The notes under the pieces: model-generated
Told to the model about the DNA's origin: nothing
What the model saw: only the letters and a program-made list of their open reading frames with translations
Database searches by the model: none
Source: Macrostomum lignano
Lineage: Eukaryota
NCBI GenBank assembly: GCA_002269645.1
Contig: NIVC01001130.1
Coordinates: forward strand, 186,001 to 250,000
Direction of reading: 5' to 3'
DNA length: 64,000 nucleotides
Made by a program: the position numbers and the translations under genes
Shown here: positions 3,106 to 52,078 of the stretch, in pieces
Layout of the letters: the number at the start of each line of letters is the position of its first letter
Position numbering within the stretch: the stretch's first letter is position 1

Positions 3106-3239
3106 TTAGCAGTCGCTGGAGAAGGTGTGCCACTGTACAATAGGCTGCTCAGGATTGTCCAGCATCTCTTGCCAGTGCTCCAGTTCGCGTCCTTTGGTGA
3201 ACAGCTCATGTCCCAGCACCACCGAGCCTAGCGATCTGT
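3106..3239 (-). CDS. SYT15: Synaptotagmin-15-like, last exon (end of C2B): DRSLGSVVLGHELFTKGRELEHWQEMLDNPEQPIVQWHTFSSDC*
   Basis: Matches SYT15 C-terminus pattern (TRGRELEHWDEML..P...RWH); acceptor CTGCAG ending 3240; phase 1 fits upstream exon; TAA 3106-3108; not in ORF track. Confidence 0.88.
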
Positions 3240-3319
3240 CTGCAGTGTGTTTAGTGGCCTGTGTTAATGCTCGGTTTGCGACACACTGGGAACTTGGGTT
3301 CCCATACTCTAATCATTAC

Positions 3320-3870
3320 TTCAATCGGTGTCTGATTCCCCACTCTAATCCTGGCTTCAACCGGTGTCTGATTCCCCACTCTAATCCTGGCTTCACCGGT
3401 GTCTGATTCCCCACTCTAATCCTGGCTTCACCGGTGTCTGATTCCCCACTCTAATCCTGGCTTCACCGGTGTCTGATTCCCCACTCTAATCCTGGCTTCA
3501 CCGGTGTCTGATTCCCCACTCTAATCCTGGCTTCACCGGTGTCTGATTCCCCACTCTAATCCTGGCTTCACCGGTGTCTGATTCCCCACTCTAATCCTGG
3601 CTTCAACCGGTGTCTGATTCCCCACTCTAATCCTTGGCTTCAACTGGTCTGATTCCCCACTCTAATCCTGGCTTCACCGGTGTCTGATTCCCCACTCTAA
3701 TCCTTGGCTTCAACCGGTGTCTGATTCCCCACTCTAATCCTGGCTTCAACCGGTGTCTGATTCCCCACTCTAATCCTGGCTTCAACCGGTGTCTGATTCC
3801 CCACTCTAATCCTGGCTTCAACCGGTGTCTGATTCCCCACTCTAATCCTGGCTTCAACCGGTGTCTGATT
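3320..3870. repeat. 35/36-bp intronic minisatellite (GTCTGATTCCCCACTCTAATCCTGGCTTCACCGGT), ~16 copies
   Basis: Direct periodicity. Confidence 0.95.
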
Positions 3871-3922
3871 CGCCACAATGGCTGTCTACATGTAATTCCC
3901 TATCAGAACAGCATCGCCTCAC

Positions 3923-4108
3923 CAAACAGCGCCCCAATGCCCGAGCAACGCTGCATAAGCAGCAGTCTGATGGTGCTCTGCTTCGGGTCCGCGAATCGAT
4001 TGAAAATAAGCGACTCATTGAACACGCCAGTGCTGACCGCTTCGGTTCGCTTGCACTTGATCTCCCGGCCCTGCATGCCGGCGTGTAGCGACACGCGGAG
4101 GTACAGCT
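3923..4108 (-). CDS. SYT15: Synaptotagmin-15-like exon (C2B core): ELYLRVSLHAGMQGREIKCKRTEAVSTGVFNESLIF...
   Basis: C2 pattern Y.RVSL..IKCKRT..VFNES..F; TTAG acceptor, G|GTGAG donor; 186 nt, phase 1-1. Confidence 0.85.
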
Positions 4109-4194
4109 CTAATTGGTGCGGACGGACGGGGAGAAGTAGATTGGCGCGAGTGAACAGTTTTCCAGGGACTGTGTATAACTGTCATGGACTCAGA

Positions 4195-4500
4195 AGTGAA
4201 AACAAACCGGGAAAGCCAGGGACTCCTAGAATTCACCTGGACTGGATTGAAGCAACCTGACTTCTGAGAACTCACCTGGACTGGATCAAAGCAACCCGGA
4301 AAAGTCAGGAACTAAAACTCACCTGGACTGAATCACAGTACCCGGGAAAACCAGGGACTCCTAGAACTTACCTGAACTGGATCGAAGCAATCCGGGAAAG
4401 CCCGGGACTCCTAGAACTCACATAGACTGGAACGAAGCAACTCGCGCAAGTCAGGGACTTCTAGAGTTCACCTGAACTAAACCAAACAACCAAGAAAGCC
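4195..4500. repeat. Degenerate ~50-bp tandem repeat (GGGAAAGCCAGGGACTCCTAGAACTCACCTGGACTGGATCGAAGCAACC), ~6 copies
   Basis: Recurrent GGGACTCCTAGAA..CACCTG.ACT motifs with ~50-nt spacing. Confidence 0.75.
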
Positions 4501-5119
4501 AGAAAAGCCAAAAACGGAGACGATGAGGCTTAGGTCGTTGTGATCTGCATAGACTCGTGCTCAAGCGGGAGGCCACGCATACTTGAAATCGGGTTGCTAT
4601 GACTTACAGTTGTATAGGGATAAGAAGCGAAATTAATTCCCAGCATGCCCTGCACCAATTCAGTACGCTTTTTACATAGATATATAGACATCATTTGCAT
4701 AGCGGTGCTGCTGCGTGGGCCACCGGGGGGACGAAATCAAATAAAATAGTAAGTTATCTATCAATTTAGCAGAGCTGTCCTACTTCTGCTTGTTAGTGCT
4801 GCTGAGCCGATGTTAATTCTGAAACTTCCCGCGCGGAGGCTGGATTGAAGATCTCTAAGGCTTTTATAATGTTTGAGAACTCAATAAGGAACTGGCTGAA
4901 GCTGGAATTGGTTTTGGATAGAGAAAAAAAAATATGTCCGAACTTTCCTGTCTGAGGTCTCATCCGTGCAGTCTCTGTGTCTGCCGCAGTAATTCTGCGC
5001 TTTCACTGCCCTAATCCTGCCCCTTGAATGCACCTCTAATTTCTGTTGATGGAAACTGGCTATCTACTCTGGAAAGTTTTATGCTGCCAGCCTCCGTTCC
5101 ACTAGACTTTTCTGCTTTA

Positions 5120-7855
5120 CTGTCTCACTCACTGTCTCTCCCTCACTGTCTCCCTCACTGTCTCTCCCTCACTGTCTCCCTCACTGTCTCCCTCACTGTC
5201 TCTCCCTCACTGTCTCTCCCTCACTGTCTCTCCCTCACTGTCTCTCCCTCACTGTCTCTCCCTCACTGTCTCTCCCTCACTGTCTTTCCCTCACTGTCTC
5301 TCCCTCACTGTCTCTCCCTCACTGTCTTTCCCTCACTGTCTCTCCCTCACTGTCTCTCCCTCACTGTCTTTCCCTCACTGTCTCTCCCTCACTGTCTCTC
5401 CCTCACTGTCTCTCTCTCACTGTCTCCCTCACTGTCTCCCTCACTGTCTCTCCCTCACTGTCTCCCTCACTGTCTCTCCCTCACTCTCTCCCTCACTGTC
5501 TCCCTCACTCTCTCCCTCACTCTCTCCCTCACTGTCTCTCCCTCACTGTCTCCCTCACTGTCTCTCCCTCACTGTCTCCCTCACTGTCTCTCTCTCACTG
5601 TCTCTCACTCACTGTCTCTCTCTCACTGTCTCCCTCACTGTCTCTCCCTCACTGTCTCTCCCTCACTCTCTCCCTCACTGTCTCTCCCTCACTCTCTCCC
5701 TCACTGTCTCCCTCACTGTCTCCCTCACTGTCTCCCTCACTGTCTCTCCCTCACTGTCTCACTCACTGTCTCTCCCTCACTGTCTCCCTCACTGTCTCCC
5801 TCACTGTCTCCCTCACTGTCTCCCTCACTGTCTCTCCCTCACTGTCTCTCCCTCACTGTCTCCCTCACTGTCTCCCTCACTGTCTCTCTCACTGTCTCCC
5901 TCACTGTCTCTCTCACTGTCTCTCCCTCACTGTCTCACTCACTGTCTCTCTCACTGTCTCACTCACTGTCTCTCCCTCACTGTCTCCCTCACTGTCTCTC
6001 CCTCACTGTCTCACTCACTGTCTCTCCCTCACTGTCTCACTCACTGTCTCCCTCACTGTCTCCCTCACTGTCTCACTCACTGTCTCTCCCTCACTGTCTC
6101 TCCCTCACTGTCTCCCTCACTGTCTCCCTCACTGTCTCTCTCACTGTCTCCCTCACTGTCTCCCTCACTGTCTCTCCCTCACTGTCTCACTCACTGTCTC
6201 CCTCACTGTTTCTCTCACTGTCTCACTCACTGTCTCCCTCACTGTCTCTCCCTCACTGTCTCACTCACTGTCTCTCCCTCACTGTCTCCCTCACTGTCTC
6301 TCTCACTGTCTCACTCACTGTCTCCCTCACTGTCTCTCCCTCACTGTCTCACTCACTGTCTCTCCCTCACTATCTCCCTCACTGTCTCCCTCACTGTCTC
6401 CCTCACTGTCTCTCCCTCACTGTCTCTCCCTCACTGTCTCTCCCTCACTGTCTCTCCCTCACTGTCTCTCCCTCACTGTCTCTCCCTCACTGTCTCTCCC
6501 TCACTGTCTCTCCCTCACTGTCTCTCCCTCACTGTCTTTCCCTCACTGTCTCTCCCTCACTGTCTCTCCCTCACTGTCTCTCCCTCACTGTCTCTCTCTC
6601 ACTGTCTTTCCCTCACTGTCTCTCCCTCACTGTCTCTCCCTCACTGTCTCTCCCTCACTGTCTCTCTCTCACTGTCTCCCTCACTGTCTCCCTCACTGTC
6701 TCTCCCTCACTGTCTCCCTCACTGTCTCTCCCTCACTCTCTCCCTCACTGTCTCCCTCACTCTCTCCCTCACTCTCTCCCTCACTGTCTCTCCCTCACTG
6801 TCTCCCTCACTGTCTCTCCCTCACTGTCTCCCTCACTGTCTCTCTCTCACTGTCTCTCACTCACTGTCTCTCTCTCACTGTCTCCCTCACTGTCTCTCCC
6901 TCACTGTCTCTCCCTCACTCTCTCCCTCACTGTCTCTCCCTCACTCTCTCCCTCACTGTCTCCCTCACTGTCTCCCTCACTGTCTCCCTCACTGTCTCTC
7001 CCTCACTGTCTCACTCACTGTCTCTCCCTCACTGTCTCACTCACTGTCTCCCTCACTGTCTCCCTCACTGTCTCACTCACTGTCTCTCCCTCACTGTCTC
7101 TCCCTCACTGTCTCCCTCACTGTCTCCCTCACTGTCTCTCTCACTGTCTCCCTCACTGTCTCTCTCACTGTCTCTCCCTCACTGTCTCACTCACTGTCTC
7201 TCCCTCACTGTCTCTCCCTCACTCTCTCCCTCACTGTCTCTCCCTCACTCTCTCCCTCACTGTCTCACTCACTGTCTCTCCCTCACTGTCTCACTCACTG
7301 TCTCCCTCACTGTCTCCCTCACTGTCTCCCTCACTGTCTCTCCCTCACTGTCTCTCCCTCACTGTCTCTCCCTCACTGTCTCCCTCACTGTCTCCCTCAC
7401 TGTCTCTCTCACTGTCTCCCTCACTGTCTCCCTCACTGTCTCTCTCACTGTCTCACTCACTGTCTCCCTCACTGTCTCTCCCTCACTGTCTCACTCACTG
7501 TCTCTCCCTCACTGTCTCCCTCACTGTCTCCCTCACTGTCTCTCTCACTGTCTCTCCCTCACTGTCTCACTCACTGTCTCTCCCTCACTGTCTCCCTCAC
7601 TGTCTCCCTCACTGTCTCTCCCTCACTGTCTCCCTCACTGTCTCCCTCACTGTCTCTCCCTCACTGTCTCTCCCTCATTGTCTCTCCCTCACTCTCTCCC
7701 TCACTGTCTCCCTCACTGTCTCCCTCACTGTCTCCCTCACTGTCTCCCTCACTGTCTCCCTCACTGTCTCCCTCACTGTCTCCCTCACTCTCTCCCTCAC
7801 TGTCTCTCCCTCACTCTCTCCCTCACTGTCTCTCCTTCACTCTCTCCCTCACTGC
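5120..7855. repeat. 2.7-kb array of mixed 12/14-bp units (TCACTGTCTCCC / TCACTGTCTCTCCC)
   Basis: Direct periodicity; source of the 962-aa SLSLPHC pseudo-ORF. Confidence 0.97.
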
Positions 7856-8334
7856 ATCCCCTTCCCTCCAGCACATCACAAGCTGTACTCTGATCAAGTC
7901 GCACCAGCTTGATAAATTTAAAAAAATGGTGACAGATTTTGTGCAGCTTAATTAACCTTCACGCATTCAGCATTCCCACAGGCTAATCAAGCCTTCGATA
8001 ACCAAATTAGCCAACCGCCGTGGCCTGGCTGATAAACTTCCAAATTAAAGAAAAATTTGCACGGTTTCCAAGAATCACAGCGTAGAAACTGGAGAATTTC
8101 AAGTGGATTAAGTGAATGTGGATTAACTTTCAAGGAATTCGGGTCAGTGATATTGTTAATTAAGATTTTTTACACGAAGTCTTGCAATTCGGTTTGTTTT
8201 TGCCAGATTCAATCAGCAGAAGTTCAACATTTCTTCCATTTTTCTTATTTTGATTAAACAAAAATTATTTTGAGGTTATGAAGGCTTTTTGCGATTATTT
8301 ATTAATCACGGAAAGTTACGGCTTTTTATCAGCA

Positions 8335-8920
8335 GGGTTTCATGAGGGTCCATGGCAAACAAGTGCCAAGCCTTAGATAGCTACGGGCTTTTACCGTCTC
8401 GCTTCCAGTCCAGCAGAGTTTCATGAGGGGTCCATGGCAAACAAGTGCCAAGCCTCAGGTAGCTACGGGCTTTCTATTGTCTCGCTTCCAGTCCAGTAGG
8501 GTTTCATGAGGGATCCATGGCAAACAAGTGCCAAGCCTTAGGTAGCTACGGGCTTTTACCGTCTCGCTTCCAGTCCAGCAGAGTTTCATGAGGGGTCCAT
8601 GGCAAACAAGTGCCAAGCCTTAGGTAGCTACGGGCTTTTACCGTCTCGCTTCCAGTCCAGCAGAGTTTCATGAGGGGTCCATGGCAAACAAGTGCCAAGC
8701 CTTAGGTAGCTACGGGCTTTCTATTGTCTCGCTTCCAGTCCAGCAGAGTTGTATGAGGGGTCCATGGCAAACAAGTGCCAAGCCTCAGGTAGCTACGGGC
8801 TTTTACCGTCTCGCTTCCAGTCCAGCAGAGTTTCATGAGGGGTCCATGGCAAACAAGTGCCAAGCCTCAGGTAGCTACGGGCTTTCTATTGTCTCGCTTC
8901 CAGTCCAGTAGGGTTTCAGA
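8335..8920. repeat. ~82-bp minisatellite, ~7 copies
   Basis: CATGGCAAACAAGTGCC recurs at 8351, 8433, 8516, 8598, 8680, 8764, 8846. Confidence 0.93.
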
Positions 8921-9043
8921 CGACCATGGGAGAAATAGAAATTCAATCTATCTAACAGGGTTCCGTGTTCTATGACCCCAGATAGCCCTCCAGTCCAGAC
9001 GATGCAATTAGGGGTCTTCGGCAAGCGCACGCCCAAGCCTCAC

Positions 9044-9161
9044 CCATGGGCTGGTCATCCTGTCGAACTGGCAGATTTCGACAGTCGTGCAGGCCGACAG
9101 TGATTCGCTGCATCAGAGCGTGATGAGTCAGCGAGACTCGAACCTCGGTCCGATCTGCTGC
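9044..9161 (-). CDS. SYT15: Synaptotagmin-15-like exon (start of C2B): AADRTEVRVSLTHHALMQRITVGLHDCRNLPVRQDDQPM
   Basis: C2 beta1-beta2 pattern; TTAG acceptor, G|GTGAG donor; 118 nt, phase 0-1; not in ORF track. Confidence 0.83.
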
Positions 9162-9529
9162 CTAATAAATTATTTCAATTTAGAATCTGCTGTATTTTTC
9201 TTATATTAGACCAATAGGGAGTGAAAGTCCCTACTCGAATTTAGCCAAGGAGTTTTCTGTAGTGCTGAGAAGCTATGAGGATTAAACTGCTTGTTTTATT
9301 ATCGATCAATATTAGTCTTACGGTTTAATGCATTTGAACACTTTTTAAGGTCTAGCGGAATTCAGCCACCCATGTTCTTTGTTTATCTAAGCCTCTTCAA
9401 TGAGCTCTTCTTTGACAACACCAGCTAAGCCTTCGTCCATTAGTATTGATACATTTTTCCGTTCTGTTTTAAGCCAGGCTTTTAGCTTGAATTTCTTAAA
9501 TCATTGCCGAAAGAAATTTTCTCTGTGCA

Positions 9530-12500
9530 TTAATTATCTATCTCTATGGATTATCAATCTCTGCCTACGGATTATCAATCTCTGTCTATGGATTATCAAT
9601 CTATCTCTATGGATTATCCATCTCTGTCTATGGATTATCAATCTCTGCCTACGGATTATCAATCTCTGTCTATGGATTATCAATCTCTGTCTATGGATTA
9701 TCCATCTCTGTCTATGGATTATCAATCTCTGTCTATGGATTATCAATCTCTGTCTATGGATTATCAATCTCTGTCTATGGATTATCAATCTCTGTCTATG
9801 GATTATCAATCTCTGCCTATGGATTATCAATGTCTGTCTATGGATTATCAATCTCTGTCTATGGATTATCAATCTCTGTCTATGGATGATCAATCTCTGT
9901 CTACGGATTATCAATCTCTGTCTATGGATTATCAATCTCTGCCTACGGATTATCAATCTCTGCCTACGGATTATCAATCTCTGTCTATGGATGATCAATC
10001 TCTGCCTACGGATTATCAATCTCTGTCTATGGATTATCAATCTCTGTCTATGGATGATCAATCTCTGTCTATGGATGATCAATCTCTGTCTATGGATGAT
10101 CAATCTCTGCCTACGGATTATCAATCTCTGTCTATGGATTATCAATCTCTGCCTACGGATTATCAATCTCTGTCTATGGATGATCAATCTCTGCCTACGG
10201 ATTATCAATATCTGTCTATGGATTATCAATCTCTGTCTATGGATGATCAATCTCTGCCTACGGATTATCAATCTCTGTCTATGGATGATCAATCTCTGCC
10301 TACGGATTATCAATCTCTGTCTATGGATTATCAATCTCTGTCTATGGATTATCAATCTCTGTCTATGGATTATCAATCTCTGTCTATGGATTATCAATCT
10401 CTGTCTATGGATTATCAATCTCTGTCTATGGATTATCAATCTCTGTCTATGGATTATCCATCTCTGCCTATGAATTATCAATCTCTGTCTATGGATTATC
10501 AATCTCTGCATACGGATTATCAATCCCTATGGATTAGCACTCTGTCGAGGGATTATCAATCTCCATGGATTATCAATCTCTGCCTACGGATTATCAATCT
10601 CTGTCTATGGATTATCAATCTATCTCTATGGATTATCCATCTCTGTCTATGGATTATCAATCTCTGCCTACGGATTATCAATCTCTGTCTATGGATTATC
10701 AATCTATCTCTATGGATTATCCATCTCTGTCTATGGATTATCAATCTCTGCCTACGGATTATCAATCTCTGTCTATGGATTATCAATCTCTGTCTATGGA
10801 TTATCCATCTCTGTCTATGGATTATCAATCTCTGTCTATGGATTATCAATCTCTGTCTATGGATTATCAATCTCTGTCTATGGATTATCAATCTCTGTCT
10901 ATGGATTATCAATCTCTGCCTATGGATTATCAATGTCTGTCTATGGATTATCAATCTCTGTCTATGGATTATCAATCTCTGTCTATGGATGATCAATCTC
11001 TGTCTACGGATTATCAATCTCTGTCTATGGATTATCAATCTCTGCCTACGGATTATCAATCTCTGCCTACGGATTATCAATCTCTGTCTATGGATGATCA
11101 ATCTCTGCCTACGGATTATCAATCTCTGTCTATGGATTATCAATCTCTGTCTATGGATGATCAATCTCTGTCTATGGATGATCAATCTCTGTCTATGGAT
11201 GATCAATCTCTGCCTACGGATTATCAATCTCTGTCTATGGATTATCAATCTCTGCCTACGGATTATCAATCTCTGTCTATGGATGATCAATCTCTGCCTA
11301 CGGATTATCAATATCTGTCTATGGATTATCAATCTCTGTCTATGGATTATCAATCTCTGCCTACGGATTATCAATCTCTGTCTATGGATGATCAATCTCT
11401 GCCTACGGATTATCAATCTCTGTCTATGGATTATCAATCTCTGTCTATGGATTATCAATCTCTGTCTATGGATTATCAATCTCTGTCTATGGATTATCAA
11501 TCTCTGTCTATGGATTATCAATCTCTGTCTATGGATTATCAATCTCTGTCTATGGATTATCCATCTCTGCCTATGAATTATCAATCTCTGTCTATGGATT
11601 ATCAATCTCTGCATACGGATTATCAATCCCTATGGATTAGCACTCTGTCGAGGGATTATCAATCTCCATGGATTATCAATCTCTGCCTACGGATTATCAA
11701 TCTCTGTCTATGGATTATCAATCTCTGTCTATGGATGATCAATCTCTGTCTATGGATTATCAATCTCTGTCTATGGATTATCAATCTCTGTCTATGGATT
11801 ATCAATCTCTGTCTATGGATTATCCATCTCTGCCTATGAATTATCAATCTCTGTCTATGGATTATCAATCTCTGCATACGGATTATCAATCCCTATGGAT
11901 TAGCACTCTGTCGAGGGATTATCAATCTCTATGGATTATCAATCTCTGCCTAAGGATTATCAATCCCTATGGATTAGCACTCTGTCGAGGGATTATCAAT
12001 CTCCATGGATTATCAATCTCTGCCTACGGATTATCAATCTCTGTCTATGGATTATCAATCTCTGCCTACGGATTATCAATCCCTATGGATTAGCACTCTG
12101 TCGAGGGATTATCAATCTCTATGGATTATCAATCTCTGCCTAAGGATTATCAATCCCTATGGATTAGCACTCTGTCGAGGGATTATCAATCTCTATGGAT
12201 TATCAATCTCTGCCTACGGATTATCAATCTCTGTCTATGGATTATCAATCTCTGCCTACGGATTATCAATCCCTATGGATTAGCACTCTGTCGAGGGATT
12301 TTCAATCTCTATGGATTATCAATCTCTGCCTAAGGATTATCAATCCCTATGGATTAGCACTCTGTCGAGGGATTATCAATCTCCATGGATTATCAATCTC
12401 TGCCTACGGATTATCAATCTCTGTCTACGGATTATCAATCTCTGTCTATGGATTATCAATCTCTGTCTATGGATGATCAATCTCTGTCTACGGATTATCA

Positions 12501-12630
12501 ATCTCTGTCTATGGATGATCAATCTCTGTCTATGGATTATCAATCTCTGTCTATGGATTATCAATCTCTGTCTATGGATTATTAATCTCTATATGGATTA
12601 TCAATCTCTGTCTATGGATTATCAATCTTT
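9530..12630. repeat. 3.1-kb 21-bp minisatellite (GGATTATCAATCTCTGTCTAT) with higher-order duplications
   Basis: Direct periodicity; source of MDYQSLS / IINLCLW / IIHRQRL pseudo-ORFs. Confidence 0.97.
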
Positions 12631-12688
12631 ATATAACTGTCTCCGTTCTTTTCGTCCTTAGCCCTCTCCTTCCTTCTCTCCCGCTCAC

Positions 12689-12856
12689 ATCGAACTGCGC
12701 GGGCTCCAGATCGCGAAATATTCGGCAGTCTTTGCCGAACGACAGCAGGTCACCCAGCGCATAATCGGTGAACCCAACCGGCCGGTGCCGCCGCTGCCGG
12801 TCGATCTGGCAGACCGTCAACTGCAGCGAGTGGCTGTCGAGGCTGTCGTGCGGTAT
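12689..12856 (-). CDS. SYT15: Synaptotagmin-15-like exon (end of C2A): IPHDSLDSHSLQLTVCQIDRQRRHRPVG...RIFRDLEPAQFD
   Basis: DRQRRH..VG and IFRDLE resemble SYT15 DRQRKH.LLG and IWRDLE; CAG acceptor, GTGAG donor; 168 nt, phase 0-0. Confidence 0.88.
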
Positions 12857-12959
12857 CTGCCATGCCCGGTGTTCGGGTTCGGGGGGGGGGCAGCTCAACG
12901 GTCAACGCGTTCGACTCTCGGCATATTAACAGTTGATTGCACCTGCGGCCCTGCCCCAA

Positions 12960-13226
12960 TTAGGCCAGATGTGCAACCGACAGCTCAGCCGCAGCTATTG
13001 CGCGGCGCATCTGAAAGCTGCGTACGGCTGTTCAGTCCAAGGACTGGGGGGTCGCCACACATACCTTCAATTATCCCAGCTAATGCTGGCACCCATTTTA
13101 CAGCTGGGGTGAACTGAAGCATTGCAGAGTTAAGTGTCTTGCCCAATGAAACAGATTGTTCCGGTGGGAACAGGAATCGAAACCCCCACCCTCAAGTAGA
13201 GAGTCCGACGCTCTAAACTACTAGCT
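12960..13226 (-). mobile_element. tRNA-derived SINE with CORE-like central domain, in SYT15 intron; 3' end uncertain
   Basis: Minus strand: A-box-like TAGCTAGTAGTTTAGAGCG, B-box-like GGTTTCGATTCC, then TTGGGCAAGACACTTAACTCTGCAATGCTTCAGTTCACCCCAGCTGTAAAATGGG resembling the MIR/CORE consensus. Confidence 0.72.
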
Positions 13227-13268
13227 GTAGATAAAATTAAAATTAAGCAATATATTATTTAATTTTAC

Positions 13269-13362
13269 CCGAAAGTAGAACTTTTCGTCGAAATTCGGAC
13301 TGCTGGTCTTCCGTTTCACCGAAGTCGTGTGCACCCGGCGTTCGCCTCCCTCAACTGAGACG
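13269..13362 (-). CDS. SYT15: Synaptotagmin-15-like exon (C2A): VSVEGGERRVHTTSVKRKTSSPNFDEKFYFR
   Basis: KRKTS.P.FDE.F.F motif as in SYT15; CAG acceptor, GTAAAA donor; 94 nt, phase 2-0. Confidence 0.88.
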
Positions 13363-13484
13363 CTGAGTCCATGATGATGATGATGATGATGTGGGTTGAA
13401 GTGTCTTAGAATTATCCACAATGTGTGTCCTTGTATATCCAAATTCTATCCATCCATATTGTGTCTTTGATCTATGCACTGTCA

Positions 13485-15045: not shown

Positions 15046-15060
15046 TCGCCACCCCCTCAC

Positions 15061-15295
15061 CGCACATAGCAGTCTGCCGCCTGCGTCGTTTCCCTGCCGC
15101 TGCCGCTGCCGCCGCCGTTGCTTGGTCGCAGGTTCCTGGCTTTGGCCACCGTGACAGTCAGCTGCTCGGCGTCCTTGGAGTAGTTGAGCACGAACCACAG
15201 ACGGCCGACGTGTCCTGGCGGCTGCTCGTACAGCTCGTCGGCTCCTTCGTTGAAATACAGGGTCGGGTCCAGCTGGCCTAGGGCGCGGCTTTTCA
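15061..15295 (-). CDS. SYT15: Synaptotagmin-15-like exon (linker + start of C2A): KSRALGQLDPTLY...GRLWFVLNYSKDAEQLTVTVAKARNL...DCYVR
   Basis: G.LDP.LY and GRLWF..Y motifs; CTGCAG acceptor, CG|GTGAG donor; 235 nt, phase 1-2. Confidence 0.9.
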
Positions 15296-15399
15296 CTGCA
15301 GGGTAGGACAGACTTCTCGTGCAGTTGATGGCTGAGACCTTTCCCATCGTAAATGTGTCCTTGACTCCTTTCCCATCATCGATGTGTGCTTCCCCATTT

Positions 15400-15735
15400 C
15401 TAATGTGTCTTTCCCCATCTCCAAAGTGTCCTTCCTCATCCCCAAAGTGTCCCTCCCCATCCCCAAAGTGTCCTTCCCCATCCCCAAAGTGTCCTTCCCC
15501 ATCCCCAAAGTGTCCTTCCCCATCCCCAAAGTGTCCTTCCCCATCCCAAAGTGTCCTTCCCCATCCCCAAAGTGTCCTTCCCCATCCCAAAGTGTCCTTC
15601 CTCATCCCCAAAGGTCTTTCCCCATCCCCAAAGTGTCCTTCCCCATCCCCAAAGTGTCCTTCCCCATCCCCAAAGTGTCCTTCCCCATCCCCAAAGTGTC
15701 CTTCCCCATCCCCAAAGTGTCCCTCCCCATCCCGA
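15400..15735. repeat. 21-bp minisatellite (CCCCATCCCCAAAGTGTCCTT), ~15 copies
   Basis: Direct periodicity. Confidence 0.93.
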
Positions 15736-16184
15736 TAATCTCCCCTTATTCTGCATCCCTTTGCAAATCTGGGAGCAAGCGCGGATTTTGTGAAAGTTAT
15801 TAGCAGAATGCGTTAGACAAAAGCTAGTCGCTCGGAGCATTATTTGTCCCCAATGCCACAATGGCTAGTTAGCAAGAGCAGGGAGATTGACTTCGGCTGC
15901 TCAACGCCCAGGCATTTGGAGTGTAATGAGCACAGGGAGTGCGAGAATACCCGCTCCCCTTTGTGTCCTATTCCCATATAGGAGTGAAAAATTGTGGAAA
16001 TTAACTGATTCACAAGGGGGCGCAGTGCCTCACACCCATTGTAGATGGAGACAATAATGAATTGCAGTGCTTTCAGCGCATTGCTCTACTGCTGGCGAAA
16101 AAAGTACTTAGCGATCTGCAAGTCTCCTTGTCCACCCTATCTAATATTATATCTCTATATGTCTATCTACCAATCTGCGCTACT

Positions 16185-16655
16185 GATCTGCCATCTACTC
16201 AACTACTAATCTGCCGTTCACTAATTATCTACTAATCTGCCATTCACTAATCTACTAATCTGCTATTCACTAATCTACTAATCTGACATTCACTAATCTA
16301 CTAATCTGCCATTCACTAATCTACTAATCTGCTATTCACTGATATACTAATCTGCTATTCACTAATCTACTAATCTGCCATTCACTAATCTACTAATCTG
16401 ACATTCACTAATCTACTAATCTGCCATTCACTAATTATCTAATCTGCTATTCACTAATCTACTAATCCGCCATTCACTAATCTACTAATCTGCCGTTCAC
16501 TAATCTACTAATCTTCCATTCACTAATCTACTAATCTGCCATTCACTGATCTAATTATCTGCCAGTCACTAATCTACTAATCTGACATTCACTAATCTAC
16601 TAATCTGCCGTTCACTAATCTACTAATCTGCCGTTCACTAATCTACTAATCTGTC
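16185..16655. repeat. 23-bp minisatellite (CTAATCTGCCATTCACTAATCTA), ~20 copies
   Basis: Direct periodicity. Confidence 0.92.
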
Positions 16656-16680
16656 AGTCAAAGTGCCTGGCGGCTCTCAC

Positions 16681-16938
16681 TGTGATCAGTCGGCGCGTAC
16701 TTCTTCGGCATTATCCAGCTGGCTCCGAACAAGCCGCCACCGCCGCCACCGCCGCCACCTCCAACATTGTCTCCGCCCTGAGCTGCCGACGCCGCCGCCG
16801 ACTCCGCTGCTGGCGTCGCATTCGCTGACATTCTCTGCGGCCGGTGCAGCTGCCGGACGGTGGATCCGATTGAGCGAAAGCCGGACATTGTATTGGACTT
16901 GGCCATCTGCAGCAGCTGGCTGGCATCGCCCCTGCCTG
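16681..16938 (-). CDS. Low-complexity linker exon of SYT15-like gene (AGRGDASQLLQMAKS...poly-Gly...KKYAPTDH)
   Basis: CCCCAG acceptor, A|GTGAG donor; 258 nt open, phase 1-1 matching both neighbours; no family motif. Confidence 0.7.
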
Positions 16939-16957
16939 CTGGGGCGGTTGAGGGTGT

Positions 16958-17514
<557 letters not shown>

Positions 17515-17525
17515 CCCCTCCGTAC

Positions 17526-17662
17526 CCGCCCTGCCGTCGCCGCCGCTAGAGCTGCCGTCGAAGTGCCAGCTGATGGACCGGCCAATCAGGGTCAGCAGGC
17601 CGACATCTTCCTGATCGTCGGTGGGCCCTCCGCTGCTAGCAGCGCCAGCCATGTCTGTTTGA
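17526..17662 (-). CDS. Linker exon of SYT15-like gene (QTDMAGAASSGGPTDDQEDVGLL...GGDGRA)
   Basis: CTCTCAG acceptor, G|GTACGG donor; 137 nt, phase 2-1. Confidence 0.65.
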
Positions 17663-17894
17663 CTGAGAGCTTCGCCAATTCAACGGTTAACCTCCAGGCT
17701 GAAGGGCCTTGGCAAGCCCAGCTGAGTGGCTATATACAGAAGAGCGACTGCGGTTGTCGGCTGTGATTGGCTGGCTCCTGGTAGGGTCGACAAACGGACG
17801 GGATGAGATTTCATGAATGAGAATCCTCCAATAAAGCTCATCGTTTTAAAGATCATAAAGGTTTTATAGATTAAGAGACAAGAATCTATGAGAC

Positions 17895-18958
17895 ATAGAA
17901 ATGTTATCAGCTAAGACTGTTAGTCAAGCACAGCTCTGTCACCCATAGACTACAGAAATGTTATCAGCTAAGACTGTTAGTCAAGCACAGCTCTGTCACC
18001 CATAGACTACAGAAATGTTATCAGCTAAGACTGTTAGTCAAGCACAGCTCTGTCACCCATAGACTATAGAAATGTTATCAGCTAAGACTGTTAGTCAAGC
18101 ACAGCTCTGTCACCCATAGACTACAGAAATGTTATCAGCTAAGACTGTTAGTCAAGCACAGCTCTGTCACCCATAGACTATAGAAATGTTATCAGCTAAG
18201 ACTGTTAGTCAAGCACAGCTCTGTCACCCATAGACTATAGAAATTTTATCAGCTAAGACTGTTAGTCAAGCACAGCTCTGTCACCCATAGACTACAGAAA
18301 TGTTATCAGCTAAGACTGTTAGTCAAGCACAGCTCTGTCACCCATAGACTATAGAAATGTTATCAGCTAAGACTGTTAGTCAAGCACAGCTCTGTCACCC
18401 ATAGACTATAGAAATGTTATCAGCTAAGACTGTTAGTCAAGCACAGCTCTGTCACCCATAGACTACAGAAATGTTATCAGCTAAGACTGTTAGTCAAGCA
18501 CAGCTCTGTCACCCATAGACTATAGAAATGTTATCAGCTAAGACTGTTAGTCAAGCACAGCTCTGTCACCCATAGACTACAGAAATGTTATCAGCTAAGA
18601 CTGTTAGTCAAGCACAGCTCTGTCACCCATAGACTATAGAAATTTTATCAGCTAAGACTGTTAGTCAAGCACAGCTCTGTCACCCATAGACTATAGAAAT
18701 TTTATCAGCTAAGACTGTTAGTCAAGCACAGCTCTGTCACCCATAGACTATAGAAATGTTATCAGCTAAGACTGTTAGTCAAGCACAGCTCTGTCACCCA
18801 TAGACTATAGAAATGTTATCAGCTAAGACTGTTAGTCAAGCACAGCTCTGTCACCCATAGACTACAGAAATGTTATCAGCTAAGACTGTTAGTCAAGCAC
18901 AGCTCTGTCACCCATAGACTATAGAAATGTTATCAGCTAAGACTGTTAGTCAAGCACA
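17895..18958. repeat. 57-bp minisatellite (GAAATGTTATCAGCTAAGACTGTTAGTCAAGCACAGCTCTGTCACCCATAGACTAYA), ~18.5 near-identical copies
   Basis: Direct periodicity. Confidence 0.97.
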
Positions 18959-19644
18959 TAGTCAATGTTATCTGCTGTCAGTTTAGTACTTTACTGTATG
19001 CGGAACAAAATTTTAGGCGAATTTACTCAATCTCGGGTCAAACTTGCAATAAAAAATCTAAAACTTTTTCACCCCGTCGGTCAGTTGAGCTGACGAGGCT
19101 CGACAGGAGAAGGGTAGAAAGCGAAGAATTAAGTAGGGAGGCTCGGGGGGGATGCACTGCGGGCCATCCTCGCTTGACCGCGTCACCCGAGCGCTAAATT
19201 GAAATTGCACACAATTAATATCAACCAAGGCACTCCTAACTTCGGTGAGCGAGTTGCAGCGACCGCTGATAGAAGAACCTGTCAAGGACTAGAAGGAGTC
19301 TTATTTGCTGTCCTAATTAATATCATCTGAAACTTTTTAGGAAGCATTTTTGAGAAAAAAGTTCTCCATTCTCAGAATATTGGTAGTCTGTTACATTGTC
19401 AGCCACCAGATTAACTACGGGAAAAATTAGGTTGGGCAGTACAAACCGCAGAAATTCTGTTGACCAAGTCTACCGTGAGCTAAAATTGGAAAAATATACG
19501 AGTAGTTATCTGGTTTGCTGAGCCTGGGGATATCGAAAATCCGGCTCATATTGACATTTTATTTAAGAACTGTTTGCTAACAGCAGGGCTGCAGTGTAAG
19601 TTTTTGTTCGTTTTCAGTGCTGATAGCGGCAGTCTGAAAGCCTG

Positions 19645-20387
19645 CCTGTCTTAGTGTCTGCCTTAGTGTCTGCCTTAGTGTCTGCCTTAGTGTCTGCCTT
19701 AGTGTCTGCCTTAGTGTCTGCCTTAGTGTCTGCCTTAGTGTCTGCCTTAGTGTCTGCCTTAGTGTCTGCCTTAGTGTCTGCCTTAGTGTCTGCCTTAGTG
19801 TCTGCCTTAGTGTCTGCCTTAGTGTCTGCCTTAGTGTCTGCCTTAGTGTCTGCCTTAGTGTCTGCCTTAGTGTCTGTCTTAGTGTCTGTCTTAGTGTCTG
19901 CCTTAGTATCTGCCTTAGTGTCTGTCTTAGTGTCTGTCTTAGTGTCTGCCTTAGTGTCTGCCTTAGTGTCTGCCTTAGTATCTGTCTTAGTGTCTGTCTT
20001 AGTGTCTGCCTTAGTGTCTGTCTTAGTGTCTGTCCTAGTGTCTGTCTTAGTGTCTGTCTTAGTGTCCGCCTTAGTGTCTGTCCTAGTGTCTGTCTTAGTG
20101 TCTGCCTAAGTGTCTGTCTTAGTGTCTGTCCTAGTGTCTGTCTTAGTGTCTGTCTTAGTGTCCGCCTTAGTGTCTGTCCTAGTGTCTGTCTTAGTGTCTG
20201 CCTAAGTGTCTGTCTTAGTGTCTGTCCTAGTGTCTGTCCTAGTGTCTGTCTTAGTGTCTGTCTTAGTGTCCGCCTTAGTGTCTGTCCTAGTGTCTATCTT
20301 AGTGTCTGCCTTAGTGTCTGTCCTACTGTCTGCCTTAGTGTCTGTCCTAGTGTCTGCCTTAGTGTCTGTCTTAGTGTCTGCCTTAGT
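19645..20387. repeat. 12-bp minisatellite (TTAGTGTCTGYC), ~60 copies
   Basis: Direct periodicity. Confidence 0.97.
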
Positions 20388-20603
20388 GCATGCTAACTAA
20401 TACATACACATACCTGCATTGCCCTATGCATTAGTTGAACCTTCAACACCCAACGTGAAATCATGAACAGAATCAGCATCTCCAGCCGGACAAGTTTATT
20501 TAAATTGGATTGTTTTGTTTCTCCGAGTTTCGAGTTTCAACATCAAGTTCAGAAGGTGGAGCATCGAGTCGGCATTCAACGGTTCCCGTAGCCCCGCGCT
20601 CAC

Positions 20604-20697
20604 ACCTGCATCGAGGCCTCCGAGCTCGTCGTGCGGCTGCTGTAGCCAACCAGAGCCCCGGCCACCAGCAGAGAGTCCTCGGACTCGTCCGTAACGA

Positions 20698-20758
<61 letters not shown>

Positions 20759-21136
20759 GCCGTCAACCGTAGTCAAATTTGTAGTCGACCGTTCGATTCT
20801 CCACCTAGACGCCGACGTCTCGGAGGCAGCGTCGGCTGCGGCAGCGGTGGCCTCGTTAATGGCTAAGAAGTCGGGCTTCAGGTCGGCCAGTTGGCTGTCA
20901 GAGGTGCTGCAGCTGCCCAGCCGGTGGAGGCGGTCCTGAATGCTGCCATCACCTGTACTGGAATCGTCGGGCCCAAGTGTGCGGCTGTCGGCGAATGAGG
21001 CGACCGTCTGCCTGCCCCGATTCAAGCAGATCCAGCGGGCCGACAGGGACGACGGGCAGGAGGAGGCGGCCGGCAGCCGGTAGCCGAAGTTGAGGAACGG
21101 CGCGTCGGTGAGATACGGCACCGGGTCCGTGATGCC
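20604..21136 (-). CDS. Ser/Gly-rich linker exon of SYT15-like gene (GITDPVPYL...~21 Gly...SSEASMQ)
   Basis: CCCTCAG acceptor, GT|GTGAG donor; 533 nt open, phase 0-2; GC-rich codon-like composition. Confidence 0.65.
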
Positions 21137-21153
21137 CTGAGGGTAGGGCGCGA

Positions 21154-21385
21154 CTCTGGCTGTGCTGTCCATCCCTTCTCTCCACTCTCTGGCTGTGCTG
21201 TCCATCCCTTCTCTCCACTCTCTGGCTGTGCTGTCCATCCCTTCTCTCCACTCTCTGGCTGTGCTGTCCATCCCTTCTCTCCACTCTCTAGCTGTGCTGT
21301 CCATCCCTTCTCTCCACTCTCTGACTGTGCTGTCCATCCCTTCTCTCCACTCTCTGGCTGTGCTGTCCATCCCTTCTCTCCACTC
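21154..21385. repeat. 33-bp minisatellite (CTCTCTGGCTGTGCTGTCCATCCCTTCTCTCCA), ~7 copies
   Basis: Direct periodicity. Confidence 0.93.
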
Positions 21386-21465
21386 TCTCTCTGGCTGGAC
21401 CGCCACCCCTTCATCTCGTCTCTTAGCTTAAGCCGCCTCCCTCTCAAACCCGAACTCCCCCTTAC

Positions 21466-21565
21466 CAAACGGGTCATCAGCATTCGCCTCTTCTCAACGC
21501 CAAAGATACCGGAAGTCTTCTGCGGCATAGGCAGCACTGTGCATCTGTTCAGCTCAAGCAGGTTC
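21466..21565 (-). CDS. Small internal exon (NLLELNRCTVLPMPQKTSGIFGVEKRRMLMTRL) bridging TMEM55-like and SYT15-like parts
   Basis: TACTGAC branch-point-like motif ~35 nt upstream, TCCAG acceptor, GTAAGG donor; 100 nt, phase 2-0; only one open frame. Confidence 0.6.
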
Positions 21566-22264
21566 CTGGATTGCAGCAGTTGAGCGGGTTTGGTGTCAGT
21601 AAGAAAATTTATTATAATACTACATTGAGTTCTGTATCTCAGGCCTTCGATATGAAGGCAGTGCGTGGGGATTAGGGGGGAGGAAAAAAATAAAGAACAG
21701 AGCAATCGACTGGAAGAGATGGATGCGTTTTTAGAGTAAGGGAATGGGAGGTTGAAGCCACAGAGAAGTTTTTTTCTAAGAGGGAGAATTCTCGTATTAA
21801 AGTCCGTCCATGGCAACTGTCTCATGTAGGTCAATACCGCCTGCCGGAGCCCTCGAGTCGCACGTGACTAAGTCTGGGGGTTCGATTTCCGATCCTTCAG
21901 CATATGATGCAAATCTAGATGGACAGCGAGCTCGACAAGAGGCCGCGGGAAGACCCGACAAGCAGCAGCCGGAGACCAGACCGGCTATTCGCTTCACTGC
22001 TGTTGGAGTTCTAACTGACTGGAGTTCAGACTTGAGCTCAGGAGGAGCCACTGGCCCATGGCAACCAGTATATTGATTTTCTGCGAGCAACCCTATCACC
22101 TCAAGGAATCTATCGAAGTGCATTGGAATGTTCGGGGGTTAAAAAATGCCTACAGGGCACGGCTTATGGTTGAAAAGTTTGCTCAGAGAATCTTTTAATT
22201 GACATTATCTGATCACGGAACTTTCCAGCACAGAGTCCGTCAGGCATCACCCGGGGAGTCAATT

Positions 22265-24017
22265 GAGTCCATCAAGCATCACCCAGGAACTCAACTGAGA
22301 GTCCATCAAGCATCACCCAGGAACTCAACTGAGAGTCCATCAAGCATCACCCAGGAACTCAACTGAGAGTCCATCAAGCATCACCCAGGGACTCAACTGA
22401 GAGTCCATCAAGCATCACCCAGGGACTCAACTGAGAGTCCATCAAGCATCACCCAGGAACTCAACTGAAAGTCCATCAAGCATCACCCAGGAACTCACTG
22501 AGAGTCCATCAAGCATCACCCAGGAACTCACTGAGAGTCCATCAAGCATCATCCAGCCACTCAACTGAGAGTCCATCAAGCATCACCCAGGGACTCAACT
22601 GAGAGTCCATCAAGCATCACCCAGGAACTCAACTGAGAGTCCATCAAGCATCACCCAGGAACTCAACTGAAAGTCCATCAAGCATCACCCAGGAACTCAA
22701 CTGAGAGTCCATCAAGCATCACCCAGGAACTCAACTGAAAGTCCATCAAGCATCACCCAGGAACTCACTGAGAGTCCATCAAGCATCACCCAGGGACTCA
22801 ACTGAAAGTCCATCAAGCATCACCCAGGAACTCAACTGAGAGTCCATCAAGCAACACCCAGGAACTCAACTGAGAGTCCATCAAGCAACACCCAGGAACT
22901 CACTGAGAGTCCATCAAGCATCACCCAGGGACTCAACTGAGAGTCCATCAAGCATCACCCAGGAACTCACTGAGAGTCCATCAAGCATCACCCAGGAACT
23001 CACTGAGAGTCCATCAAGCATCACCCAGGAACTCAACTGAGAGTCCATCAAGCATCACCCAGGAACTCACTGAGAGTCCATCAAGCATCACCCAGGAACT
23101 CAACTGAGAGTCCATCAAGCATCACCCAGGAACTCAACTGAGAGTCCATCAAGCAACACCCAGGAACTCACTGAGAGTCCATCAAGCATCACCCAGGAAC
23201 TCAACTGAGAGTCCATCAAGCATCACCCAGGGACTCAACTGAAAGTCCATCAAGCATCACCCAGGAACTCAACTGAGAGTCCATCAAGCAACACCCAGGA
23301 ACTCAACTGAGAGTCCATCAAGCATCACCCAGGAACTCACTGAGAGTCCATCAAGCATCACCCAGGAACTCAACTGAGAGTCCATCAAGCATCACCCAGG
23401 AACTCAACTGAGAGTCCATCAAACATCATCCAGCCACTCAACTGAGAGTCCATCAAGCATCACCCAGGAACTCACTGAGAGTCCATCAAGCATCACCCAG
23501 GAACTCACTGAGAGTCCATCAAGCATCACCCAGGGACTCAACTGAGAGTCCATCAAGCATCACCCAGGAACTCAACTGAAAGTCCATCAAGCATCACCCA
23601 GGGACTCAACTGAGAGTCCATCAAGCATCACCCAGGAACTCAACTGAGAGTCCATCAAGCATCACCCAGGAACTCAACTGAGAGTCCATCAAGCATCACC
23701 CAGGAACTCAACTGAGAGTCCATCAAGCATCACCCAGGAACTCAACTGAAAGTCCATCAAGCATCACCCAGGAACTCAACTGAAAGTCCATCAAGCATCA
23801 CCCAGGGACTCAACTGAGAGTCCATCAAGCATCACCCAGGAACTCAACTGAGAGTCCATCAAGCATCACCCAGGAACTCAACTGAGAGTCCATCAAGCAT
23901 CACCCAGGAACTCAACTGAAAGTCCATCAAGCATCACCCAGGAACTCAACTGAAAGTCCATCAAGCATCACCCAGCCACTCAACTGAGAGTCCATCAAGC
24001 ATCACCCAGGGACTCAA
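22265..24017. repeat. 34/33-bp minisatellite (CATCAAGCATCACCCAGGAACTCAACTGAGAGTC), ~52 copies
   Basis: Direct periodicity. Confidence 0.97.
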
Positions 24018-24036
24018 GCGAAGCAGATTTGCTCAC

Positions 24037-24423
24037 TGCAGCAGCCGAGACTTGTGCCGCTGATAATGCTTCCTGCTCCGCCTGGCAATGTAGGCCACAA
24101 AGGCGCACATGAACAGCATTAGGAACGGCATCGGCGAGATGTAAGAATCGCATGACGACCACTTGATGGCGATCAGGGTTATCTGGAGAACAGCCTCTAT
24201 GCCGATCAGGACAGCCAGAATTAGCAGCTCCACCCAGCGGGGCACAGTGACGCTGCCGCAAGGCAGTTGCAGCACATCGCCTTTCCATTGTGAACCACTG
24301 GACAGAATGTACTTGCTGAAGAAGCACCTTGGACAGCGGTGCGTGTACCGGTGCTTGTACAGGGTGACGTACCTGGTGGTATGAATCGATGATTTGATAA
24401 GGCTGGTGAGCTGGCACATTAGC
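24037..24423 (-). CDS. TMEM55: TMEM55/PIP4P-like exon 2: CPRC knuckle plus two TM helices; ends at CA|GTGAGC donor (or TGA at 24033-24035 if unspliced)
   Basis: CCAAG acceptor, phase 2 fits exon 1; HRCPRC; TM1 [26 protein letters not shown]2 [16 protein letters not shown] followed by RRSRK. Confidence 0.72.
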
Positions 24424-24454
24424 CTTGGCTCACGTTACTACTATCAACCCACCG

Positions 24455-24640
24455 GTGCACCCACCTCACTCAGCACTCACCTCACTCCGCACCCACCTCA
24501 CTCCGCACCCACCTCACTCCGCACCCACCTCAGTCTGCACCCACATCAGTCTGCACCCACCTCACTCAGCATCCACCTCAGTCTGCACCCACATCAGTCT
24601 GCACCCACCTCACTCAGCATCCACCTCAGTCTGCACCCAC
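24455..24640. repeat. Short C-rich composite tandem repeat (CACCCACCTCA.. / CAGTCTG..) in TMEM55-like intron 1
   Basis: Recurrent CACCCAC.TCA motifs. Confidence 0.8.
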
Positions 24641-24669
24641 TTCTCTAAAAAATCAACTTTAAAGCTCAC

Positions 24670-25037
24670 GTTTGTCCGCAGTGGCAGGTGAGCGGCAGAA
24701 TAGTCTCTACAGAGTACACAGCCTCCCGCAGCTGGAAGACCTCCAGACAGGCCGGGCAGAACACGGTCGAAGCAATTTTACGCACAACCAGCAGAGCCTG
24801 ACAGCGGCAGCGCACGTAGCGGGTGCTGGGTAGCGGCGCCTTGAGCGGAGTGACGTAGCGGCACTCGGTGCAGCGGTAGAACGGCTCGCTAGAGGAGTTC
24901 ACGAGGCCCGGCGAGCCGCAGCGCAGACAGACCACGTTGTCCCGTTTGTAATCGTAGAGATCTCTGAGAGCTTCCAGCAGCTGCTCTGTAGGCTGCTGCT
25001 TGGCTAGGTTGTCATAGTAACCCTTTATCAGGTCCAT
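24670..25037 (-). CDS. TMEM55: TMEM55/PIP4P-like exon 1: Cys-rich zinc-binding domain
   Basis: [40 protein letters not shown] aligns with TMEM55 CRVC..[34 protein letters not shown]; ATG 25037; AC|GTGAG donor. Confidence 0.8.
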
Positions 25038-52065: not shown

Positions 52066-52078
52066 ACCTCGAACTCAC

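Follow-up and report, generated by a model that had tools for sequence, protein, structure and literature searches.

A TMEM55B-like membrane module and a synaptotagmin-type C2 pair in one open frame of Macrostomum lignano: candidate gene fusion or neighbouring genes

Background

Synaptotagmins are defined as a family by the order of their parts, a transmembrane (TM) segment, a linker and the two C2 domains C2A and C2B. On contig NIVC01001130.1 (hereafter C1130) of the Macrostomum lignano assembly Mlig_3_7, a locus on the minus strand presents such a C2 pair in an unusual setting: 12 exons join into one open frame that begins with a protein resembling the lysosomal adaptor TMEM55B, passes directly over what looks like its stop codon, and ends in a synaptotagmin-type tandem C2 module. 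The stretch analysed, here called the window, is 64,000 nucleotides (nt) long (C1130:186001-250000), and all positions below are window positions unless a contig is named. An original prediction, made by a model from the letters of this DNA, had read the 12 exons as a fusion gene in which a TMEM55-like zinc domain with two TM segments anchors the C2 domains. Here we describe the two modules, the linker that separates them and the junction at which they would be spliced, and we weigh the fusion against readings in which two ordinary genes happen to stand side by side.

The locus and its second copy

Joining the exons as originally proposed gives 2718 nt and 905 amino acids (aa) with no internal stop, across introns that all run from GT to AG, and our recomputation reproduced this join throughout. 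One boundary is better placed elsewhere, and the proposed length changes with it. The acceptor first chosen for exon 2, at 24423 (…CCAAG/G, an AAG site), was rejected for 24372 (…CACCAG/GTACGTC, a CAG site), because the latter is free of an insertion, scores higher in Pfam, agrees with the public models and carries the acceptor motif of the species: the 17 aa that 24423 would add are a pure insertion against every TMEM55 relative in our alignment (A1), Tmemb_55A (PF09788) scores 23.8 bits with 24372 against 17.6 bits with 24423, and 24372 is used by all public models of the locus. On these grounds exon 2 probably starts at 24372, and the joined product would be 888 aa long. The acceptor of exon 6 is a NAGNAG site (16938 or 16935), and the public models splice to its second AG, 3 nt further on. 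False TGA stops created by phase-2 NN/GTGAG donors, previously noticed at exon 1 and at the exon ending at 15061 (exon 7), are present at both and at exon 4 as well.

The entire locus is duplicated on a second contig, C87 (446007-468047), where 12 of 12 exons, all splice dinucleotides and the joined open frame are kept. Between the copies the exons differ at 20 positions, 10 of them synonymous and 10 non-synonymous, and by one length change of 27 nt in a poly-Gly tract. Divergence amounts to 0.75% in exons and to 1.72%, plus 17 indel events, in unique intron and flanking sequence. The lower divergence of the exons, together with the stop-free linker described below, goes beyond chance. The first base of exon 3 is G in C1130 and A in C87, so that a CAG codon of the fused frame becomes CAA and the amino acid stays the same. 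Between copies this similar, conservation reveals little about the junction.

A divergent TMEM55B-like module

Judged by its sequence and its modelled fold, the N-terminal module (residues 1-235, the N-module) is a divergent, lineage-specific extra TMEM55B-like copy. Its score of 23.8 bits (E = 2.8e-5) falls below the Pfam gathering cut-off of 30 for PF09788, and the TMEM55 assignment of the original prediction stands by predicted fold, by the only match in the PDB and by reciprocal family matches. A phmmer search against 1.84 billion representatives returned 18 matches only, 10 of which are M. lignano models of the locus itself, full of errors (nine with the junction peptide, the tenth, P0013, frameshifted). 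Seven of the remaining eight are PF09788 proteins, at 91-2108 bits, P0014 being the exception, with HYR-like repeats in place of that domain; E-values against the N-module are 3e-5 to 3e-4 for the six weakest (P0015-P0021). PIP4P1/TMEM55B is the sole PDB sequence match (E = 1.1e-5). The AlphaFold2 (AF2) model has a mean predicted local distance difference test (pLDDT) value of 63, rising to 70-82 over residues 40-100 and over two long C-terminal helices, and the top three Foldseek matches are all TMEM55B (9qm9 and 8oqh), with probability 1.00 and a target template-modelling score (TM-score) of 0.66-0.68, all other matches lying at E >0.1. All six sequences of alignment A1 share nine cysteines, which form CxxC/CxC pairs. 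A hydropathy scan of the whole product finds TM-grade segments only at residues ~166-195 and 200-219 (model helices at 168-195 and 204-234), with none in the linker or the C2 part, and the earlier statement that no other TM segment lies upstream of the C2 domains is thereby borne out. Translation of the module would begin at MDLIK, in a strong ATG context (A at -3, G at +4).

The series of zinc pairs, the predicted tandem RING-like fold, the two C-terminal TM helices, the short basic tail and a length of 235 aa, typical of the family, all recall TMEM55B/PIP4P1 (PF09788; PDB 8oqh, 9qm9). Unlike TMEM55B/PIP4P1, the N-module scores below the Pfam threshold, has no CX5R motif, exists as an extra copy beside a canonical orthologue and may run on into a C2 protein. 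The C-SETAS-R stretch of P0017, which we take to be the catalytic CX5R motif, aligns in A1 with V-RKIAS-T of the N-module, Cys and Arg being replaced by Val and Thr. A search of the genome finds the module only at the C1130 locus and its C87 twin; the canonical TMEM55 orthologue lies elsewhere, in three copies that score 134 + 71 bits for PF09788 in two exons.

A synaptotagmin-type C2 pair behind a coding linker

By sequence, the C-terminal module is a synaptotagmin-family tandem C2A-C2B, and its original identification is sound at the level of the family. Pfam finds C2 twice (86.5 bits), the Syt1 C2AB structures 5w5c and 5kj7 align over residues 30-308 of the 311-aa query, through both domains, at E = 7e-26, and the C-terminal WHxL-type tail is present, as NPEQPIVQWHTF here against NPRRPIAQWHTL in Syt1 (…NP..PI.QWHT). 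C2A keeps Asp at two of the five Ca2+-ligand positions of Syt1 (SDPY/ADCY; YDFDRFSKHD/CQIDRQRRHR). The single TM anchor of synaptotagmins is missing: the hydropathy scan shows no hydrophobic segment between MPQKT, at the first in-frame ATG of exon 3, and C2A, and the C2 part would therefore be anchored only if the TMEM55-like hairpin is spliced onto it. The tandem C2 domains, the tail and a long linker ahead of C2A are thus shared with synaptotagmins (Syt1; Ca2+-independent members such as SYT15), from which the C2 protein of the locus differs in having no N-terminal single-pass TM segment, a C2A poor in Ca2+ ligands and a low-complexity linker of ~340 aa.

The closest paralogue, BOX15_Mlig005944 (PAA47720/PAA52451/PAA58803; 369 aa), shares 53% identity with the protein in a collinear alignment that runs from MSGFR to the C-terminus, and it supports the junctions of exons 6-12. 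Like a second group of paralogues it has no similarity to residues 1-500, and unlike the gene described here it is without the linker and has nothing TMEM55-like within 10 kb upstream; indeed no homologue of residues 1-500 was found within 10 kb upstream of the C2 paralogues on C3240, C684 and C90.

The linker exons, which like the N-module were found only at the C1130 locus and its C87 twin, are clearly coding by every sequence measure applied to them, and would add a low-complexity N-terminal extension of ~340 aa to the C2 protein. Read in the proposed frame, exons 3-5 (770 nt, 256 codons) are free of stops, of which the two other frames hold nine each, their GC content at third codon positions (GC3) is 0.79, similar to that of the flanking modules, and they differ between the two copies at 4 of 770 nt, where ~13 differences would be expected at the intron rate, the only indel being a multiple of three. 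The same properties, namely 256 stop-free codons, a coding-like GC3, low divergence between copies and an indel that preserves the frame, make it very improbable that exons 3-5 are noncoding, with the exons upstream untranslated or spurious and the C2 protein beginning in exon 6 at MAKSNT or MSGFR, even though the annotated start of the paralogue, MSGFR behind a perfect GCCACCATG context, aligns with MSGFR of exon 6. Upstream of that start the paralogue reads …QKIAKSAT-MSGFR (L024 8800-8900), which resembles the in-frame …LQMAKSNT-MSGFR of the window (16875-16938). From this likeness it looks as if an ancestral 5' untranslated region (UTR) became coding when the linker exons were added.

The junction between the two modules

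At the centre of the proposed fusion is a stop codon that may also be a splice donor. As had been described, the apparent TGA stop of the TMEM55-like frame lies inside a GTGAG pentamer that can be read as a phase-2 donor, and the pentamer is identical in C87. GT[G/A]AG is the donor motif of M. lignano, as CAG is its acceptor motif (PMC8629364), and it is carried by 9 of the 11 donors of the model. Inside the 2667 nt of exons, GTRAG occurs not once against 4.6 expected, a count matched by only 4 of 1000 shuffles. Being typical of donors and otherwise absent from the exons, the GTGAG over the stop codon is unlikely to go unused. By a simple estimate, only ~1% of unrelated neighbour pairs would combine a TGA that has G on both sides (~1/16) with phases that match (1/3) and a frame that stays open for 12 codons behind the acceptor (~0.56). 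Across the spacer, the phase-2 acceptor at 21565 and the TACTGAC motif ahead of it were found where the original prediction had placed them, with the branch A 31 nt from the acceptor, which reads ATCCAG here and ATGCAG in C87. The peptide across the join would read …SRLLQNLLELNR…. The first ATG behind the acceptor, that of MPQKT, has a weak context, with C at both -3 and +4, and is preceded at a distance of 17 nt by an ATG in another frame.

Further points favour the fusion: its topology fits, since both TM segments lie directly before the junction and are followed by a cytosolic tail, and the C2 part belongs to a family with a TM segment and a linker ahead of C2A; neither the TMEM55-like copy nor the linker is seen away from this locus and its twin, and the paralogous C2 genes lack both; the ATG context of MDLIK is strong and that of MPQKT weak, with an out-of-frame ATG ahead; the join is exact, in frame and open in C87 too; and the linker is truly coding in the joined frame.

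One gene or two?

Against these coincidences stands a body of evidence, gathered in this and the following two paragraphs, that weighs against the fusion. It begins with the species, which trans-splices a 35-nt spliced leader (SL) ending in ATG onto ~30% of its genes and holds ~15% of them in operons whose spacers are often repeat-rich (PMC8629364); furthermore, ~7% of its assembled transcripts are multi-gene precursors (PMC5730564). Signals of this kind are found here. The TMEM55-like open reading frame (ORF) ends 16 residues past the second TM segment, which is the canonical C-terminus of the family in A1. Past the acceptor at 21565, an in-frame ATG follows after 12 codons, as it would in a first coding exon, and 48 nt ahead of that acceptor lies an AATAAA that looks like part of an operon junction or a TATA box; hexamers resembling poly(A) signals are rare here, with eight in 19.3 kb of intron and no other within 130 nt of an acceptor. 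When its 1786 nt of minisatellite are subtracted, the spacer of 2471 nt shrinks to 685 nt, and same-strand neighbours with a repeat-adjusted spacer of <1 kb are counted as operon partners (PMC8629364). The donor at 24037, moreover, could serve another site, on sequence grounds, since the alternative TAG acceptor at 22149, with its short TMEM55-like tail HFLTPEHSNALR and a stop, is present as originally noted; if the donor does serve 22149, the splice would take out the minisatellite and leave a tail of 12 codons, and the coincidence that remains (phase and 12 open codons) is only ~0.19.

The paralogues and relatives point the same way. BOX15_Mlig005944 comes from a transcript-based annotation and is annotated as TM-less, which weakens the argument that the hairpin supplies a missing anchor. 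Outside M. lignano, none of the phmmer relatives of the N-module contains a C2 domain. The original prediction had proposed to look in related species for proteins with both domains, and no relative outside Macrostomum carries both modules.

Among public proteins, the exact products of 235, 641 and 888 aa are absent from a collection of 15 billion, and a 157-aa peptide spanning the junction retrieved two automated UniProt models only and no transcript-derived protein, from collections in which proteins translated from RNA assemblies of this species do not occur.

A tenable, though doubtful, alternative is that of two genes in an operon-like unit. The C2 messenger RNA (mRNA) would be SL trans-spliced at 21565 and yield a soluble, TM-less protein of ~641 aa from MPQKT or MLMTRL, the TMEM55-like mRNA would end just past the AATAAA at 21613, either unspliced (235 aa) or spliced from 24037 to 22149 (247 aa), and the fused ORF would be a coincidence of phase followed by ab initio gene finders and by the original prediction. 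Such a unit would account for the canonical C-terminus, for the hexamer ahead of the acceptor, which is conserved in C87, and the ATG behind it, for a short spacer of the repeat-rich kind described for the species and for the TM-less paralogues; the conserved block at 22143-21602 fits a terminal exon or 3'UTR, and use of 22149 would lift the coincidence from ~1% to the ~0.19 given above. It meets difficulties at the acceptor. Unless 22149 is used, the free cis donor upstream should capture the site, under the quoted rule that acceptors are trans-spliced if they lack a complementing cis donor (PMC8629364), and neither ATCCAG nor ATGCAG fits [T/C]TNCAG, which marks 44% of SL sites (PMC8629364). 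The ATG of the SL would open an upstream ORF of 4 codons, and a second out-of-frame ATG precedes the weak-context MPQKT. A two-gene unit of this form further requires a 3'UTR of ~2.4 kb or the TAG acceptor, and does not explain why a disordered N-terminal extension of 340 aa stays open in frame.

Less probable still, and in our view unlikely, is a pair of independent genes, the TMEM55-like one polyadenylated after the ATTAAA at 22199 and the C2 gene driven by a promoter in the 685 nt of unique spacer, with TATTATAATAAAT at 21620-21608 as its TATA box, a start site near 21585 and an AG at 21566 that never serves as an acceptor. In keeping with this, an AT block resembling a TATA box stands ~45-55 nt ahead of exon 3, the two copies agree closely in the spacer block and the ATTAAA directly follows the minisatellite. 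In that block (22143-21602) they differ by 3 substitutions and one 2-nt indel in ~540 nt, against the 1.72% baseline, a marginal sign that it belongs to the TMEM55-like gene as terminal exon or 3'UTR, or is a promoter, other intron segments being equally conserved. A start site further upstream would place at least five ATGs ahead of MPQKT. Ahead of the acceptor, the frame of exon 3 continues for 100 codons without a stop (21566-21867), but an unspliced coding extension into it was rejected, since the 2-nt indel in C87 breaks it and no ATG follows the indel. With independent genes, a good branch point and a CAG acceptor would go unused, and the GTGAG over the stop codon would stay a coincidence of ~1%.

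Falsely merged neighbours and SL operon partners are among the closest known systems. They share with this locus same-strand ORFs, an acceptor just ahead of the first ATG of the second ORF, a poly(A)-like hexamer before that acceptor, a repeat-rich spacer and automated models that merge the two (PMC8629364, PMC5730564); unlike ordinary false merges, the merge here uses a consensus donor exactly on the stop codon, a pentamer otherwise absent from the exons.

Weighing all of this, we find that the coincidences in favour of a fusion and the operon-like signals roughly cancel, and that the sequence gives about equal support to a fusion and to a separate C2 gene with its 5' end at 21565. Of the individual readings, a fusion made as at least one substantial isoform ranks first, with a probability that we would put at about 0.4, and so the odds are slightly against it; the two-gene readings taken together are somewhat more likely than the fusion, at roughly even odds. 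We infer use of the 24037-to-21565 junction, and with it the localisation and function of the protein.

Should the fusion be made, the locus would be one transcription unit whose exons 1-2 encode a TMEM55B-like module, presumably catalytically dead, in which a two-helix membrane hairpin comes after tandem RING-like zinc domains. Splicing of the donor that lies on the stop codon to the phase-2 acceptor at 21565 would join the hairpin, through a disordered linker of ~340 aa, to the Ca2+-ligand-poor C2A-C2B, and the product of 888 aa would have both ends in the cytosol and be anchored as TMEM55B is, presumably on endolysosomes. Left unspliced, or spliced to 22149, the same unit would yield a TMEM55-like protein of 235 to 247 aa alone. 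In such a protein the dead TMEM55B-like domain and its hairpin would replace the usual synaptotagmin anchor and hold a Ca2+-insensitive C2 pair on a long tether at the cytosolic face of what are presumably endolysosomes, with a short form made as well, a tentative picture that we hold no more firmly than the splice on which it depends. Extended synaptotagmins offer a parallel: their C2 domains reach a second membrane from a hairpin anchor whose two ends are cytosolic. In its mode of action as a hairpin-anchored C2 tether, the fused product would resemble them; unlike it, extended synaptotagmins have an SMP lipid-transfer domain of their own and an unrelated hairpin in the endoplasmic reticulum, with no homology to the N-module.

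Public models and surrounding features

Six M. lignano UniProt models contain the junction peptide …HKSRLLQ/NLLELNRCTVLPMPQKTSG (RLLQ/NLLELNRC). They are ORF-maximising predictions, following the same logic as the original prediction, and not independent transcript evidence. The public models of the locus, which we take to be MAKER predictions on the older, error-prone ML2 contigs, are riddled with frameshifted stretches and, at indels of a contig, shift splice sites to stay open, P0013 omitting exon 3 and P0009 using an acceptor within it. At least nine public models (P0001-P0005, P0007-P0009, P0013) stem from the locus and its twin, all of them corrupted by frameshifts, and bear misleading automatic names ('Protein UL49', 'YcxB domain-containing', 'Protein kinase domain-containing', 'LITAF domain-containing'). 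No protein is annotated for the locus in the GenBank record of Mlig_3_7. This is to be expected, because transcripts overlapping repeat annotations were removed ahead of the Mlig_3_7 submission and 10 of the 11 introns hold minisatellites. These introns (window 3240-24669) each carry a different array, with periods of 4 to 82 nt and up to ~150 copies (among them 151 copies of a 21-nt unit at 9536-12628 and 106 copies of a 26-nt unit at 5119-7854); the arrays are not of equal length in C1130 and C87, and comparable ones fill the flanks (25497-26034, 26560-26948 and 26.9-33.5 kb).

No retrocopy was found in the genome, where a 240-nt spliced probe of exons 2-3-4 matched the two native loci only, exon by exon. 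The supplements of M. lignano papers contain no match to TMEM55, PIP4P or SYT15, and, judged by titles and abstracts, no paper on a fusion of TMEM55 with a synaptotagmin or C2 protein was found. The suggestion that the architecture had not been described thus agrees with the titles and abstracts, with the qualification that automated UniProt models already carry the join.

Elsewhere in the window lie an intron-less ORF for a rhodopsin-family G-protein-coupled receptor (38946-40121, plus strand; 7tm_1, 49.8 bits), exons of an EF-Tu-type GTPase, probably a GTPBP1/2-like gene (49899-54043, minus strand; GTP_EFTU, GTP_EFTU_D2), and a divergent pair of long single-exon ORFs, one for an IQ-motif protein (57927-59801, minus strand) and one for a homologue of dynein regulatory complex subunit 7 (60219-63122, plus strand; MORN_DRC7 365 bits, DRC7_C 144 bits). 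The features of the locus itself are collected in Table 1.

Table 1. Exons, signals and repeats of the candidate locus (window positions), with the canonical TMEM55 copies elsewhere in the genome
Feature	Position	Strand	Remarks
Exon 1, TMEM55-like	24670..25037	-	ATG 25037-25035; N-terminal helices and first RING-like/zinc-ribbon units; phase-2 AC/GTGAG donor
Exon 2, TMEM55-like	24037..24372 (acceptor corrected)	-	last zinc unit, TM1, TM2, 16-aa basic tail
GTGAG pentamer over TGA stop (24035-24033)	24032..24036	-	end of 235-aa protein or phase-2 donor
Minisatellite, 34-nt unit, ~53 copies	22232..24017	.	begins 15 nt past TGA; most of the 2471-nt spacer/intron; longer in C87
ATTAAA, possible poly(A) signal if the TMEM55-like mRNA stands alone	22194..22199	-	conserved in C87
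Alternative terminal coding piece	22111..22149	-	behind TAG acceptor 22149; would append HFLTPEHSNALR and a stop
AATAAA within TATTATAATAAAT	21608..21613	-	upstream-cistron poly(A) signal, TATA-like box or chance match; conserved in C87
TACTGAC branch-point-like motif	21595..21601	-	CACTGAC in C87
Exon 3	21466..21565	-	acceptor CAG/G, phase 2; 12 open codons (NLLELNRCTVLP), then ATG 21528-21526 (MPQKT)
Exon 4	20604..21136	-	low-complexity linker; poly-Gly tract (GGN)n at 20736-20762, 27 nt shorter in C87
Exon 5	17526..17662	-	linker
Exon 6	16681..16938	-	linker end; homology to TM-less paralogue begins at MSGFR; NAGNAG acceptor
Exon 7	15061..15295	-	C2A start
Exon 8	13269..13362	-	C2A
Exon 9	12689..12856	-	C2A end
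Exon 10	9044..9161	-	C2B start
Exon 11	3923..4108	-	C2B
Exon 12	3106..3239	-	C2B end, synaptotagmin-type tail (…NPEQPIVQWHTF…); stop TAA 3108-3106
Canonical TMEM55 copies	C508:173945-177249, C509:126556-131140, C655:172174-175018		with CX5R-type stretch (CKATGRR)

Implications

If the fusion is false, two ordinary genes lie next to each other here, and no fewer than six public entries in UniProt are chimeric artefacts. It would then serve as a warning for genomes rich in operons and spliced leaders, where a phase-2 NN/GTGAG on a stop codon lets gene finders and readers merge neighbours. If it is true, a synaptotagmin-type protein would have become membrane-anchored by co-opting the duplicate of a lysosomal adaptor that lay beside it, through a donor that evolved over the stop codon and a newly exonised linker. 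This would be a datable innovation in domain architecture, confined to one lineage, in a flatworm that is neopolyploid and amenable to transgenesis, and a natural experiment on the TMEM55B scaffold without CX5R. The product would be a lineage-specific new membrane tether or adaptor, and the donor overlapping the stop would let one gene give the short TMEM55-like protein too.

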